This document shows, in pieces, positions 31,001 through 39,468 of a stretch of 64,000 nucleotides of DNA (position 1 is its first letter; each line of letters starts with the position of its first letter). Both the position numbers and the translations under genes were made by a program. This stretch comes from Stylophora pistillata. Its lineage: Eukaryota. Location of the stretch: positions 11,274 to 75,273 of the forward strand of contig NW_019217838.1 of assembly GCF_002571385.2 (NCBI RefSeq), given 5' to 3'. The notes under the pieces are model-generated. The model made no database searches. It was not told the origin of the DNA and saw nothing but the letters and a program-made list of their open reading frames with translations.

Positions 31001-34000
31001 TTGGACGTAATATTCGTGTTTCCTTTTTCACTCTGTTTAGATGACCCAAGACAACTTGGAGGATGTTAAAGGTGAAAAATCTCGTCTCGAGGACGACTTG
31101 CGAAGGTAAACTGTCGGCGGTATTCACCTTCTACTTTTGGTTCGTGGGACCCTGCGGTCAAAGGAAAAAAAATTTTTTTAGGGAAGGAGGGGTGGGTAGC
31201 GGCTCGTCTTATATGGGGGTTAAGGAAAAGAAAAATCCTTTAACGGCAATGTTGTGGCTGGCTTAGCGAATGAACAGCAGCCCTACTTAACATTCTTATG
31301 TGTTATCAAGTTCAAAAAATTAAGACGGAAAGCTGTGTATATGAAAAGCTGTTTTGTTCTGTTTTACACAGGAAAGAGCAAGAGCTAAACGAAAGCAGTG
31401 GCAACAACGAAAATCTTCTTGCACAAATCGAGTCTCTCAAGAAAAAGATCAGAGAGTTGGAGGTAATAAAAAGTTTGAGTACAGTTGTATTATAGATCGT
31501 AGGTATTCGTATGTCGCTCGTTTGTGGCCGTATGTACTCGTATGTATCCGAATGTTGCTCGTATGCTACTAGGAATACTCCGGCGTGTGGTGCTTTAGTC
31601 ACGATCAATGAGCGACTAGCTTTCGGTGAGATTTGTCGCGGGTTTGTCTGTTGAACGATGCAGAAAGATTCGTTGAATAAAACAAAATTATTATCAACCG
31701 TCCCGGAATGTCGTTTGACCTTTGTGACACCTGTAATGTATACTTTTGAGTCCGTTTTCCGTGCGCTAAGGAGATGTACGACTGGAAGTCTGGTCTTTTG
31801 TGAAATCTGTTTGCGCTGTTAGGTTTTTCCTTTGTTTCGGTGGTTGAATTTTGATGATCCATTGATTGAAGATTAAACCGTTAATTGGACTTAGCGCTAT
31901 TATGCATTCCTGCATAACATGATCACGAGGCGTGTGGAATAGCTGATAGTCCTCGCTGAGTAGGTTTTGAATCGAATATGAAGAATTCTTAGCATTTGTG
32001 AACTTTTTTCCCGGAAATTAAAAAGGCGTAGAAATGTGGGCGTCGGAGTCTTACAACTACAGATTGTATGTTCAGCCATCGGATAACAAATACGCTGTAA
32101 GTAAAAATATCCCTTCACATGGAAAATAGATATGCCGTGTTTGCTAAACGGCGGTGTGAATCGCTCATTTGTCGATATATAGCACTTTGCACTGTTCTAT
32201 ATATTGCGCGTATGTGTGATAGCTAATTGTTAGATTTGAATCAGTGTATTCAGTTTAGAGAAAAATATTACCTGTGATGTTTGCACAAGGCTATTGTACT
32301 CTTCTGGATTTTCAGTTTGATGTTATATTCGTAAAATGTCGGTAAAAGGTTTGGTATGAAGAAAATCGGACTTGTGTATTCAGTATTTCGCCCGGGTGTT
32401 TGTAAGACATTACACAGTGGGCAGAACGCTGGGTAAATGAAAGCATGGTTGGGTGTGAAATATTCTGGGCAGAGGTGTCTTTGCTTCAATGATTTTTTAC
32501 TTTCTATGTTCTTTAGGCCAGAATCGAGGAGTTGGAAGAAGAACTTGAGGCGGAGAAGAATGCTCGATCTAAGGTATGTTGTGGTTTTATCTTTTTGACG
32601 CTTTCTACAAGCTGTGCTTCAGTTAATGCCTCATGATCGTTTTATGAAGATAGCATATTGAAATCTCTCGCGCCGGAATGACTTTTAATTCCAGAACACC
32701 CTGATTTGAATAAGAATTACAATGTACAATGTACATTCTTTGTATAGAGCTTTTGCAAACAATTAAAACTTAATCTTCGTCTCGGAATTTGGCTTCCGTC
32801 CTGCAGAGATAAAACACCAGCAATGCTCAAGGACTTGAATTTTTCCATCAAGAATATAACTCCCAGCTTGTCCCTTTAACGAAAGAGCGCTAAGTACTAG
32901 CTTAAAGGTTAAATTCAATTCCCAGAAGAGCTTTGCGAAATGGTGTATTTATTTTGTTATGCGATTACTGTCAACGTTACCAGACAAATAGCTATTAGCA
33001 GATGAAAACTTCCGTCACTTTTGTCAAATCGAAAATAAAGGGTAAATTTTTATCGCAAAAAAAAATGTTTAGAATTATTGGATTGTTTAGTAATTATCAA
33101 ATAATGCTCGGAGCAAGTCCCACAAAGTACGCATTAATCTGTTGAATTAAAGTTTAGTCAGACATGCGGCATGCACACAGCAGGTTTGGACGGGGGAAGT
33201 ATTTGCCGCACTGCTGTGCAGAAGCTGATTTCTATTTCCGATTTGTCATCAATCAGGCGGAACGAGCGCGAATGGAACTCGAGAGGGAACTGGACGATCT
33301 GAACGAACGGCTGGAAGAGCAAGGCGGCGCCACACAAGCACAGGTACAATGAAATAATTGATTTATTCATGGATTATTTACTAATTAGTTTTGTCTTAAT
33401 TCATTAAGTTTCAAGTTGTGATTTTCAAAAGAAGCAAAGATAGATTGGGTTGAGATACATGTAGGTACATCCGATAGGAGGCTCTTTTGTTCTTTGTGAA
33501 GGGACGAAAACTAGGAAACCCTTAAAAAAGCTTCAGAGCAAGGACTAGAACCGACAATCAACTCAACCCTTGACCCAACAAAGCGTTCAAACGTCTGCGC
33601 ATTTGCGAACATCATAAGGACGAGGTGTCTTGCTTTTAGGCTGTCAGAAGTTTTAGTTCTTATATTAAAAAAAAAAATCATTGGTTCCCTTGTTGTAGAT
33701 CGAGCTAAACAAAAAGCGTGAAGGTGATATAACCAGGCTGCGACGGGAACTGGAAGAACAGGCATCCCAACATGAACAGTCCGTCAACAGTATGCGAGCC
33801 AAACAGAACCAGGCCATGCAAGAACTGCAAGACGAAATGGACTCCTTGAAGAAAGCTAAATCAAAGTGTGTAACGCATACTCAGTCTTGCTACTTTCCTC
33901 TGCAGCTGTTTTTTGAAATATCACGCAACGCTGGCTTAGGCTTTCTGTAGGATGTCACGCAACGCGTTCCAGCCATTCCTTAGCATGTCACGAAACGCCT

Positions 34001-37000
34001 CCCGCGTTAGCAAGAGACGAGTGATATCCCAAAGATATGCAGGCCTGAGAGATATGACTCACGGGGAGTGGTTTTTCCTACAATCAACTGAGAGCAATAA
34101 CTTGTCACTGATGCCGAATGATGTTGTGTGATGTGACCGTCTTTATGTCAATGCAGGGCTCATTAGATGTTGAATTGCTTTGTAGGATCGAGAAGGAAAG
34201 GAATGCATTGCAAGCTGAAGGAGACGACCTTTCTGTCAGCTTAGAAACGCTGCAAAAACAAAAGGTATTTCTGCAGCCATGCTCTTTTGCGTCAAGTTAA
34301 TTTCTTGTTTTCCATGGTTTCGTCATCACTATAACTCATCATTTGAATATTATGTTTAATTTTCTCAGACCCAGTCCGACAAACAGAACAGAGCCCTGGA
34401 GGAGCAGCTCAGTGACCACAAATACCAGGTTGGTTGATAAATGCTTTATTCACCTTCCAGGCTGTTATGTCTGAGGTGCTAATACGGATGTTTCTTTTAA
34501 CCCGCTTTCGTGGAGCTGTCAAAAGAATTTAATATCTAATCGACGCTAGAATGTCTGCCGACAAGTTAAAGAGATTTAGAGCAAAAGTGTTGACCCTTAA
34601 AGGTATTTTTTTGCGATTGTAAACATGTTTTTTGGCTATGCTTCAACTTTCTCCCTGCATTAGACTCTAAAACACGCTTTGCTTTCATGGGATTGTCGCT
34701 GGAGTGATACCGTTTAGAATGAGGAAAGGGTGTTTGGTTTCTGAAATTCCATTGTGAAGTGAGCAACAAGAGGTATTGTAGCCTCTTTCTCTCCTCCTTC
34801 GAGCAGCAGTTGTTCCGCCGTGAGAATTTGAGGGAAAGGTCGGAGAAAGCGGCCGATCTATATACTTTAGGGAACTCTACATAAAAACAGCCTGCTTAAA
34901 GGAATTTTCGTGGACTCTTTTTAAATGACACTTACACTGAGCACGAAAACAAGGCACGGCAAAAAAGTCAGGTGAATGGAACAGTAGCAATTTAACGCTG
35001 CCTTGATGATTGCTAATCTGAGTGTTTGATTAGGTGGAAGAGTTAAAGAAGAGTGTTTCTGAGTTGGAGATCGCTCGTAGTCGGTTGACTCAAGAAGGAG
35101 GAGATCTTGGAAAGCAAGTGGAGGAATATGAATCTAAAATTACGGTCTTTTTGAAAAGCAAGAAAACTCTAGAGCAGAGCGTCGAAGAGCTTAAGCGACA
35201 AAATGAAGAGGAAGTTCGGGTAAGCGCAGTCAAGTTAACTCCTTTTTTTTTTTTCAACGTTTGAACGGAGTCTGTATGGCTAAACGCAAATGAACTGTTC
35301 GACTAGTCACAGCAGAATAAACAACATCGTATAAAGCTGATACGCAAAGAGCAGGAAAACATGTAACGGATTGGGTTAATTCTTACCTCTGATTGGCTGA
35401 AACTTGCATAAAGTAACCAATCCCTATTGCAGAAAGTCAGTAAGAAAATGCGTGCGGCCAAGTCAATTTGGAATCCGGATCTCAAGACCTTTTGCATTTT
35501 CTTCTCTGTAGCTTAAACTGGACGCTCAGAATAAGTTAAAGAACGCCGAAGCTGACCTGGATAGCATGCAAGAAACAATCGAGGAACTGGAGGATGGAAA
35601 GGCTGACTTGCAGAAACAGCTTACGAGACCGAACGCCGAGAACCAACAGTTAAAAGCCAAGTTCGATCAGGAGGTGTTGGGACGATTAGAAGAACTGGAA
35701 GATGCAAAGTATGTTGAGTGTTAAAAACTCATAATTGAACTGAAAACATGATAATAGGCTTAACGAAACAATACAAATAATTTTTAAACTGTGGCTTTAC
35801 TTTGGAAAAGAAATTTGAAGTCTTGGCAACTATAAAATAAGGATGAAACTTTACTTATGCCATAATTTAGCGAGCGAGATGTTCCTCGGTTTGTTATTTT
35901 CGCGCATAGTCATTTTCTTTTGACAGCTTGGAGAATTATTTGGATATATCAACAAAGTTGAAATGGTAAATTGGCCACCGTAACAATTACAAAAGCTGAC
36001 GTTTTGAGCGTTAGCCCCTTCGTCGGAGCGAATAGAGGAATTGTGGAGAATAGATTGACGGTTTTGAAAAAGGAAAGAATAGCGAAATTTTGAAAACTGG
36101 GAAACTCGCACTTGCTACACATTCATCCACCAAAAAACTTTCATCAGAATGTCAGAATTTTAATAAAGAAACGTTCTGATGGCCCTTGTATTGGATACCT
36201 TTACCGAATGGACGCTTATTCAGGGATCTCTTTTAGTCCTGAGGGTGTCCCCTGAGTGTCCCTACATGGGTTAATTAGAAATAATTAAAAGCTGAATCAT
36301 TGGATAATGCAATTCAAGAGATTTCATTGGCTTAGCCATCGTGGGTTGTGAGGCATTATACCATGCGCGCGCACGAAGACAAGACTTACCGAAAGTGTTA
36401 TTGTTCATTGTAACATTCAGTTTGTTCTTACAAAATACAGTTGGGAAGATTTATACATATTTTGGGGCGTTTTTAATGAAACAACTATTTCACTCCCGCT
36501 TGTAAAATATGGGATGTTATGGTGAACTCGGCCTATCTCGTATCCACTTCGTTCATGCGATAACTGGTATCTTGGTTTTGACTCCCTACAGACGCAAGCT
36601 GACACAAAAACTCCAGGAGACAGAGGAAGCCCTCTCCAGCGCCTCACAAAAAGCCAGTAATGCCGAGAAAGCAAAGAACAGACTCAACTCGGAACTCGAA
36701 GATGCACTTATCGATTTAGAGAAGGTTTTTGATTTATTGCTACAAATATTTTAACCGCTTCGTGTTTTTTAGATTGTTTAACCAAACGAAAATGCTACAT
36801 CGGAATTAATTGCCATGTTCTCTCACCCAATAGGCACAAACCAACGCCGCTAATCTTGAGAAGAAGCAAAAGAAGTTTGATCAGCAGATAAACGAATGGA
36901 AACTGCGATACGACGAGCTACAAGGTGAAGTGGACAACGCGCAGAAAGAAGCCCGTAACTACTCTACTGAGGTGTGTCAAAAATCTGCTTTTATTTTCAT

Positions 37001-39283
37001 TAGATAAACTTTTCCTCTTGAAATGTACGAAAGCGACCTTGTAGTAATGAACCCGACTTATGTAGAAGTGGAAATAAGGCCTGAAAAAAATTCAGGTCCG
37101 TACAACGTTTGAACCCATAACCTTGGCGATACCAGGACAGTGCTCTACAAACTGGGCTAACAAGCCGACTGAGAGCTAGCTGATCATTATGTTGGTTCGT
37201 ATTAAACCCGTCGAAGTGATGAATCAATGAATTCCAATATATGAAAATCGTATATGTGTACTGGGGTTTCTTGAAATGTATGAAAGCGATCTTCGCAGTA
37301 ATGAACCCTACTTGTGTAGTAGTGGAAATGAGGCCTCAAAAAAATTTAGGCGTGGACGGGATTTGTTTCTCTTGAGTTTTAAGGCATATGGGATGGAAAC
37401 GTTATCTCAAACTTTTGCTTTGTTTGTTTTCAGATGTTCAAACTGAAAGGTTCGAATGACGAAATGAGTGAGCAGATGGAACTTTTGCGTCGGGAAAAGA
37501 AGAGTTTGGAAGGTAAGGTTACTGTTACTGTTAAGAGTAGTAAGAAAGTTTTCTGATGCAATGCGGTGGAAGGTTTTGCATCTAAATGCCAGCAATTCTA
37601 GAATGTCACCTCAAATGTCTGTACTGATATTGCCCGTACTTGTCTTCTCAGCTGAAATTGCCGAGTTGGCGGAGCAGCTTGGAGAAGGCGGCAAGTCTGT
37701 CGTGGAAATTGAGAAAGCAAAGAAGAGACTTGAGTTCGAGAAAGATGAACTGCAGAGCGCCTTAGAGGTATGCTCAGTACTGTGAAATGATATTTTAAGT
37801 CGACTGTGCGACTGGCAAATTTTGTTTTATCAGAATAAAACTTGAGTTTCAAGGAGGAAGAAACTAAAATCCTGGAATAGAACTGGTCGTAAAATGTCTT
37901 TGTTTTTCAAGAAGGGCGCTGTAAAGAACAAGTAGAGGCCAAATTGAAGACACGTGTTCTATTGCTTTTCAGGAAATCGAGGCCGCTCTTGAAGCCGAAG
38001 AATCTAAAGTAACGCGGTTTCAGCTGGAACTCACTCAGTTCAAACAGGAGGCCGAGAAGAGAATCGCCGACAAAGATGAGGAGCTTGAAAACCTAAGGCA
38101 AGTTTAACGTTGTTTTGTTTTTGTTTTTGTTTTTGTTTTCGTTTAGAGCTCTAAGATAAAGGACTCAACCTGTCAAATACTATTCACGGCCTGACAGAAG
38201 AATACTGACGAAAGTAATGGGCAGGTTTGAAACAGAACTGAGTTCTTGCCTCCCATTACTGTGCCCCTGTGTGATTTCTTTATTTTAACACAGTAATTTA
38301 ATTTTGTAGGAAAAATCACGCTCGCCAGCTGGAGAGTCTGCAAGCTTCTTTGGAAACTGAACTGAAGGCCAAGAATGACGTGGTAAACATCTTTTTTTTT
38401 TTTTTTTTTTTTTTTCTTCCACTCTTATTAACTAGAGTTTCTTCTTAGTTGGAAGACGACAATTTAGAAATTGCTTCCCGTTCTTGTATGAAAGTTTTGT
38501 CCTGGATATGAATTATAGTGACTTCATTTTTATTTTGTAGATGCGAGCAAAGAAGAACTTGGAAGCAGTCAACAACGAATTGGAGATCAACTTGGACAAT
38601 GCTATGAAGGTGAGATTAAGACTTGGGCTTTTTCTATTATTTCCTACTTAAAGTGTTCAGTGGTCAACTTTGCTCTCCTCCCATGAAACTCGGACTAACA
38701 AGTTTAGTTTCGATTTCTAGGCGAACGGAGAATTCCAGAAGAATTTGAAGAAGTTGCAACAACAAGTGAAGGTTAGTGCGACAGGAAGTTAACTTAGAAT
38801 GTGTATTTGATATTTCGCTAATGTTCTGAGTGATCAAGGTATGGAGACAAAACTACACGTTACCTACCATGTTTAGTGAAACATCGTTAAATCGTCGATC
38901 AAAATTTTCTATCTGTACAAAGCTAATCCTTGGTACTGTACCGTGTGTATAGGATCTTCAGGTGATGGTAGAAGAAGAACAGCGAGGCAAAGACGATGCT
39001 CGTGAGGCCGCCGCTAAAGCTGAACGCCGTGCTAATGAATTCGCCTCGCAGCTGGATGAACTACGTAGTATGCTAGAACAGGTAGGAGTATCGTTGTAAT
39101 TACCCATCAGTTAAACTTTTTCTCTGTTTCTCATGTCACGGATACCAGATTATCAAAGTTTTATCAGTTGCAAGGTGCCGAGAATATATGAAGCGAAACT
39201 AATTACTCATTCTTTGGACGATCCTCGGTAATCTTTGAAAGCTTTCCTACGGACATCGGATATTTAACAGTTATTCCACGAGC

Positions 39284-39432: not shown

Positions 39433-39468
<36 letters not shown>

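Follow-up and report, generated by a model that had tools for sequence, protein, structure and literature searches.

A conserved candidate first exon inside the muscle myosin heavy chain gene of stony corals and its possible headless rod product

Introduction

The DNA analysed here (hereafter the window, a stretch of 64,000 nucleotides read as one piece) carries the muscle-type (ST) myosin II heavy chain gene of a stony coral; the ST-type assignment rests on rod motifs, including one running to ...NKKRE. A large single-exon open reading frame (ORF) at 8742-10034 encodes a nicotinic acetylcholine receptor subunit, whose best named relatives are those of Montipora (78%), Acropora (75%), and Nematostella (64%). 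A protein 84% identical to this ORF (P0280) is encoded on a contig of 38,496 nt, and the contig of L016, one of the orthologous myosin loci considered below, is equally 38,496 nt long; the matching lengths suggest a conserved receptor-myosin linkage. Within the rod part of the myosin gene, the following features (all on the + strand) are relevant to this study.

31372..31462, + strand: upstream constitutive rod exon, ending in ...KKKIRELE in phase 0; used by the full-length myosin only; 93-97% protein identity in L015-L022
31463..32516, + strand: phase-0 intron containing the putative promoter and the candidate first exon; it occupies the position of the mollusc intron holding the catchin first exon
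31793..31942, + strand: conserved non-coding block, putative internal promoter or proximal enhancer; 107/150 columns invariant in four lineages
31903..31920, + strand: invariant 18-mer TGCATTCCTGCATAACAT, containing CATTCCT
31943..32033, + strand: poorly conserved spacer, presumed to hold the transcription start site (TSS) and 5' UTR; contains an upstream ATG (uATG) at 31978 and a TAA at 32019-32021
32034..32096, + strand: candidate first coding exon, ATG plus 20 codons; pattern MWA.E..NY..Y..PSD...A; 45/63 columns invariant
32097..32102, + strand: donor GTAAGT, invariant including the preceding CGCT; conservation ends here
32517..32573, + strand: acceptor exon, the first rod exon that would be common to both products; catchin joins at the same sequence
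33257-33343, 33699-33865, 34186-34264, 34369-34428, 35034-35219, 35512-35708, 36592-36724, 36834-36971, 37434-37512, and 37652-37767, + strand: first ten of the remaining 19 shared rod exons
37973-38097, 38310-38382, 38541-38609, 38721-38771, 38953-39081, 40624-40824, 41316-41486, 41777-41977, and 42359-42634, + strand: last nine of these exons

Headless myosin rods have been described in Drosophila and in the catch muscle of molluscs, and they have been treated as lineage-specific additions. Catchin/myorod is composed of 830 residues shared with the myosin heavy chain (MHC) and 156 unique residues (PMC12040844). In molluscs, the unique catchin exon ends in ...GLLE and is followed by the shared rod (Kollmar and Hatje, 2014, Fig. 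S3; PMC3912159). The tail-only Mhc8 of Lottia gigantea, which is supported by ESTs, starts with MTARALE and continues with ARVEELE (PMC3912159). According to the same study, isoforms of the headless type are not reliably predictable without mRNA (PMC3912159). The literature searched contained no account of a catchin, myorod, or rod isoform in cnidarians. An earlier note on this DNA had proposed that intron 31463-32516 hides an internal first exon for such a headless rod. It had taken the source to be a probable cnidarian, and the receptor relatives bear this out by pointing to a stony coral. In this study, the proposed exon was compared with orthologous loci and with the known headless rods.

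Materials and methods

Exon 33699-33866 was used as the query for a search of protein representatives. The matches were almost only single-exon ORF fragments, and these were used as seeds for alignment A1. Alignment A1 was then scanned against metagenome contigs, and 12 orthologous loci were obtained (L015-L026). The protein relatives P0001-P0012 and P0276 include more distant ones, with 57-76% identity. Only stony corals are represented, and the comparison in effect covers a single deep split, between the window and the other lineages, plus shallower ones.

The rod exons of the window were placed by comparison with the 927-aa ORF of L025, a related contig, and joined computationally for the count of residues and mass. 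The 26-43 kb part of the window was compared with the orthologous loci using blastn; the rod region scanned for intronic matches comprises about 12 kb and 22 introns. Identity was profiled in 30-nt bins of alignment A2. Pairwise dN/dS values were calculated by the NG86 method. Copies of the invariant 18-mer were counted in the genome with at most 2 mismatches allowed, and the reversed sequence served as the control. The genome (G000) was searched for myosin rods with PF01576 (Myosin_tail_1), and the host intron was searched against Rfam.

Results

The myosin gene and its rod exons

All rod exon junctions of the window are colinear with the 927-aa ORF of L025, without indels, and the frame is open to the stop codon. 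From exon 32517-32573 to the stop at 42634, 20 exons encode 864 residues. Together with the 21 codons of the candidate exon, the predicted rod product is 885 aa in length (21 + 864) with a mass of 102 kDa; the earlier estimate of about 874 aa and about 100 kDa was thus close but slightly low.

The search with PF01576 yielded two loci only, the ST myosin gene and a paralogue at C30:765587-777587, and no paramyosin-like gene was detected by this search of the genome. The paralogue is a non-muscle-type gene that lacks an intron where the candidate exon lies; the same feature in this gene was therefore rejected.

Several peculiarities of the rod region were observed. Intron 38098-38309 is of the GC-AG type (AAG|GCAAGT) and is missing in L017 and L018, where the flanking exons are fused, which indicates intron gain or loss among corals. 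Segments 39448-39917 and 40301-40770 form a direct duplication of at least 470 nt with 98% identity. The first copy, in which the initial 147 nt of a rod exon are found, terminates at a single N (39920); L017 has only one copy of the sequence. An artefact of assembly or a partial duplication of very recent origin is the probable cause, rather than two mutually exclusive exons.

L025 (positions 1-3246; Ga0123360_1079041) carries a more distant myosin of the ST type, with 62% identity in the rod, and this rod is intronless. Its first 126 nt resemble the 3' end of an intron, with a branch-point-like CTGAT, a T-rich tract, and CAG, and the end of this intron-like part corresponds to acceptor 30772 of the window. 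An in-frame ATG right at the boundary opens the 927-aa headless ORF. Three origins are conceivable for L025: a transcript with its start in an intron or with an intron retained, a tail-only gene, or a genome with a giant 3' exon. When the 927-aa ORF was compared with proteins of 510-1620 aa, nothing exceeded 42% identity, and no annotated cnidarian rod-only protein was among the matches in this size range; a rod isoform could share a cluster with the full-length protein.

The candidate exon in the window

The host intron (31463-32516, + strand) is 1054 nt in length and in phase 0 at both ends. It contains an ATG at 32034-32036 with G at -3, and a TAA stop (32019-32021) lies in frame 15 nt upstream. 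From this ATG, 21 codons are open through 32096 and are followed by the donor GTAAGT (32097-32102), which is in phase 0 and matches the acceptor of exon 32517. The ATG, the 21 codons, the upstream stop, the donor, and the length and phase of the intron are all exactly as the earlier note had given them. The three bases preceding the donor (GCT at -3 to -1) are non-consensus. A uATG is present at 31978 in all lineages, between the conserved block and the start codon. It is followed by a stop after 1-4 codons (31978-31992 in the window) and reads ATG TAG in other lineages; it would form a minimal upstream ORF if the TSS lies 5' of 31978.

The arrangement by itself is unremarkable. In the 64-kb window, GTAAGT occurs 20 times on the + strand and 15 times on the - strand, and an ATG-open frame precedes the motif in 16 of 60 (+) and 9 of 45 (-) site-phase combinations, about a quarter. 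An ATG-open frame joined to GTAAGT is thus no more than the chance expectation in the window. Since such a pattern is expected given this much intron sequence, the case depends on other evidence, and cross-species conservation is what raises the candidate exon above chance.

Neither the candidate exon nor the conserved block has other copies in the genome. The sole repeated part of the intron is 31497-31607, a short repeat of CGTATGT-like units in its 5' part, with many copies on other contigs at 72-89% identity, some of them in tandem. Because only this part of the intron is repeated, a repeat or transposon origin was rejected.

Conservation in orthologous introns

Six of the orthologous loci extend back through the intron, and a homologous mini-ORF is present in all six, 370-430 nt before the junction exon. 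The mini-ORF reads MWAAEPSHNYSFYVHPSDRTSA in L015/L016, MWAAEAHNYSFYVHPSDKISA in L017/L018/L026, and MWAAEARNYSFYIHPSDKKSA in L020/L022; a fifth lineage with the exon is represented by protein P0276 only. Every orthologous mini-ORF has kept the ATG, the purine at -3, a length that is a multiple of 3, and the GCT|GTAAGT end. The longer motif CGCT|GTAAGT, together with frame and ATG, is kept in three further DNA lineages besides the window and in the lineage of P0276. A 3-nt in-frame insertion in L016 is the only indel, and the head is hence 21-22 residues long across lineages. Reading through the donor, stops are reached at places that differ by lineage. When the read-through ORF of L017 was used as a protein query, it matched only genomic read-through ORFs. 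The earlier note had named the loss of ATG, frame, or donor in related species as grounds for abandoning its proposal. The opposite was found: all three are kept in every orthologous intron obtained.

The comparison by blastn revealed a single colinear intronic match in the whole rod region, at 31779-32105, and this match ends at the donor. In the profile of alignment A2, identity is 0.71-0.87 in the flanking exons and 0.19-0.53 in the 5' part of the intron. It reaches 0.74-0.84 in the block at 31793-31942 (one bin 0.58), falls to 0.34-0.56 in the spacer at 31943-32032, is 0.68-0.80 over the mini-ORF (32033-32092), and is about 0.45 past the donor. The limits of the conserved stretch are thus the ATG and the donor. 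Identity is 0.34 over the 30 nt preceding the ATG but 0.80 over the 30 nt preceding the true acceptor (32517), which argues for a first exon and not for a cassette exon. No acceptor or polypyrimidine tract is conserved before ATG 32034 across the aligned lineages.

The substitutions in the mini-ORF are of the coding type. Its 19 variable columns are distributed 4/4/11 over codon positions 1/2/3 (binomial P=0.024), and the distributions in the upstream and downstream flanking exons are 2/1/15 and 3/2/10, respectively. In the upstream conserved block, the corresponding distribution is 16/12/15. Pairwise dN/dS of the mini-ORF is 0.18-0.36. The proportion of invariant columns is higher in the mini-ORF (45/63) than in its immediate flanks (51/126; Fisher P=6e-5). 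The mini-ORF thus exhibits the general marks of a coding exon, namely conservation bounded by ATG and donor, third-position bias, dN/dS below 1, and an indel that is a multiple of 3.

The conserved upstream block

The block at 31793-31942 is conserved as strongly as the exons, and it has no codon periodicity and has stops in all frames. Invariant runs are located at 31827-31839, 31843-31852, 31903-31920, and 31923-31932. We read the block as a putative internal promoter. The third run is the 18-mer TGCATTCCTGCATAACAT, which includes CATTCCT, a putative copy of the M-CAT/TEAD-type motif found in muscle promoters of bilaterians. Neither a TATA element nor an initiator is evident.

The 18-mer has 27 matches in the genome, about four times the 7 obtained with the reversed control. 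Its near-copies are at G000:C104:497700-497717 and 25 other sites; if these adjoin muscle genes, the 18-mer would define a coral muscle cis-element.

No Rfam family exceeded the threshold in the intron; two sub-threshold matches both fall in unconserved parts. The block has no supported RNA fold (-17 kcal/mol, with almost no covariation). A known RNA family or structured RNA was rejected on these grounds.

Discussion

We consider it probable that the myosin gene of stony corals has an internal promoter and a short coding first exon, from which a catchin-like headless rod of 885 aa and 102 kDa would be produced. This idea, the core of the earlier note, is supported by the retention of ATG, frame, and donor in relatives and by the coding-type substitution pattern. 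In the proposed mechanism, the block at 31793-31942 in intron 31463-32516 would act as the internal promoter, and transcription would start somewhere in 31943-32033. The first exon would comprise a short 5' UTR, the start codon at 32034, and 20 more codons, and splicing from donor 32097 would join it, in phase 0, to constitutive exon 32517-32573. An internal start is indirectly supported by the conserved upstream block and by the lack of a conserved acceptor before the ATG. The predicted motor-less protein would consist of a non-helical head of 21 residues followed by the last 864 residues of the myosin rod. These shared residues would correspond to the distal S2 plus light meromyosin with the assembly region; the headless rod would be expected to dimerise as a coiled coil and join thick filaments like mollusc catchin/myorod. 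Transcription, splicing, translation, and the filament role of the coral product are all inferred from the genomic DNA.

Other explanations of the conserved island were weighed. The block and the mini-ORF could be an intronic enhancer or another non-coding element of the full-length myosin, with the ATG, the frame, and the GTAAGT kept merely through constraint on the element as a whole, such as factor-binding sites or a decoy U1 site. The exon-level conservation of a non-coding block and the recurrence of the 18-mer across the genome (27 matches against 7 for the control) agree with an enhancer. However, conservation is broken by the poorly conserved spacer, resumes exactly at the ATG, and ends at the donor; the 63 nt of the mini-ORF, unlike the upstream block, display codon periodicity and a dN/dS below 0.4, and their sole indel is a multiple of 3. 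A purely non-coding element is therefore an improbable explanation. There is a similarly slim chance that the exon is transcribed but yields no headless protein, either as a cassette or 'poison' exon subject to nonsense-mediated decay (NMD) or as the first exon of a transcript that is non-coding or poorly translated. AG dinucleotides are found a short distance upstream of the ATG in each lineage, regulated exons typically have strong and conserved donors, and inclusion after the upstream exon would, as read from the sequence, introduce in-frame stops or a frameshift. Yet identity within the island is lowest over the 30 nt that precede the ATG (0.34, against 0.80 at the real acceptor), and the candidate AGs are unaligned, while the periodicity in the frame of the ATG and the low dN/dS argue for a translated peptide. 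An in-frame cassette exon was rejected outright, given the stops or frameshift and the lack of a conserved acceptor.

That the mini-ORF and donor coincide by chance in an ordinary intron, or reflect a nested element on the opposite strand, is very hard to credit. ATG-open frames ending in GTAAGT are indeed common (16 + and 9 - combinations in 64 kb), and a 72-aa ORF on the - strand overlaps the block. Against chance, this is the only intronic stretch that is still alignable between lineages, the other rod introns having diverged beyond detection. On the - strand, the frame whose wobble positions fit the variation has stops in every lineage, and the frame that is open in all four lineages places its wobble at + codon position 2, which misfits the variation; a - strand gene was rejected for these reasons.

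Among the known headless rods, catchin/myorod is the closest parallel to the predicted coral rod. It is likewise a headless product of the MHC gene, made from a unique intronic first exon spliced to the shared rod (Yamada et al., 2000; PMC3912159). The candidate exon of the coral also lies inside a muscle MHC gene, in phase with the 3' rod exons. The coral head ends in ...KYA and is followed by the same shared rod start as in catchin; the junction is the same, and the shared rod has 830 residues in catchin and 864 in the coral. The earlier note had based its catchin parallel on a similar number of residues, and the identical junction (Fig. S3, PMC3912159) makes the likeness tighter than was claimed. 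The heads differ. That of catchin has 156 residues, is Ser/Thr/Pro-rich and phosphorylated, and is conserved among molluscs, whereas that of the coral has 21-22 residues and lacks such a region; no resemblance between the coral head and the catchin domain was found when they were compared by eye. Catchin is hosted by catch muscle, whereas the host of the predicted product is a cnidarian with epitheliomuscular cells. Lottia Mhc8 has a short non-helical start of 7 residues, joined at the same rod position as in the coral. It is, however, a separate gene in a tandem array, whereas the coral element is inside a single full-length ST gene and would share its exons.

The myosin rod protein of Drosophila is a headless thick-filament protein with an internal start within Mhc (Standiford et al., 1997), as is proposed for the coral. 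It starts about 260 residues further upstream via a 5' extension of the first rod exon, and the whole rod is kept. Its N-terminus is not conserved even among flies (PMC3912159), whereas the separate coral exon is conserved across coral lineages. A Drosophila-type rod protein was rejected for the coral, since the coral junction is deeper in the rod and the candidate exon is separate and would be spliced. The warning that headless isoforms are not reliably predicted without mRNA holds for the coral exon too; compared with the Drosophila-type cases in that study (PMC3912159), a cross-species signal exists only for the coral exon. Paramyosin, a headless coiled coil of about 100 kDa that is related to the myosin rod and forms thick-filament cores, is similar in kind to the predicted coral product but is encoded by an independent gene. 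A core-forming, paramyosin-like role of the coral product is pure inference.

A wider reading is that the cnidarian-bilaterian ancestor already had a two-product muscle myosin gene, which gave the motor and, from a promoter within this phase-0 intron, a headless rod. The coral and mollusc forms would then be descendants of one arrangement, and the rod would be a non-motor thick-filament component in animals without paramyosin. We regard this reading as speculative and rather unlikely. Common descent is no more likely than independent recruitment of this phase-0 intron, because every conserved copy is from a stony coral and the heads show no sequence relationship.

The locus also illustrates that a second product of a major structural gene can be overlooked when gene models leave out very short first exons. 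It offers testable objects for work on corals and sea anemones, namely one splice junction, a 21-residue peptide, and a candidate muscle promoter of about 150 nt. A conserved internal first exon at an identical junction would be either ancestral to cnidarians and bilaterians or the result of independent recruitment of one intron, and either origin bears on how thick filaments were constructed before paramyosin, titin, and troponin.
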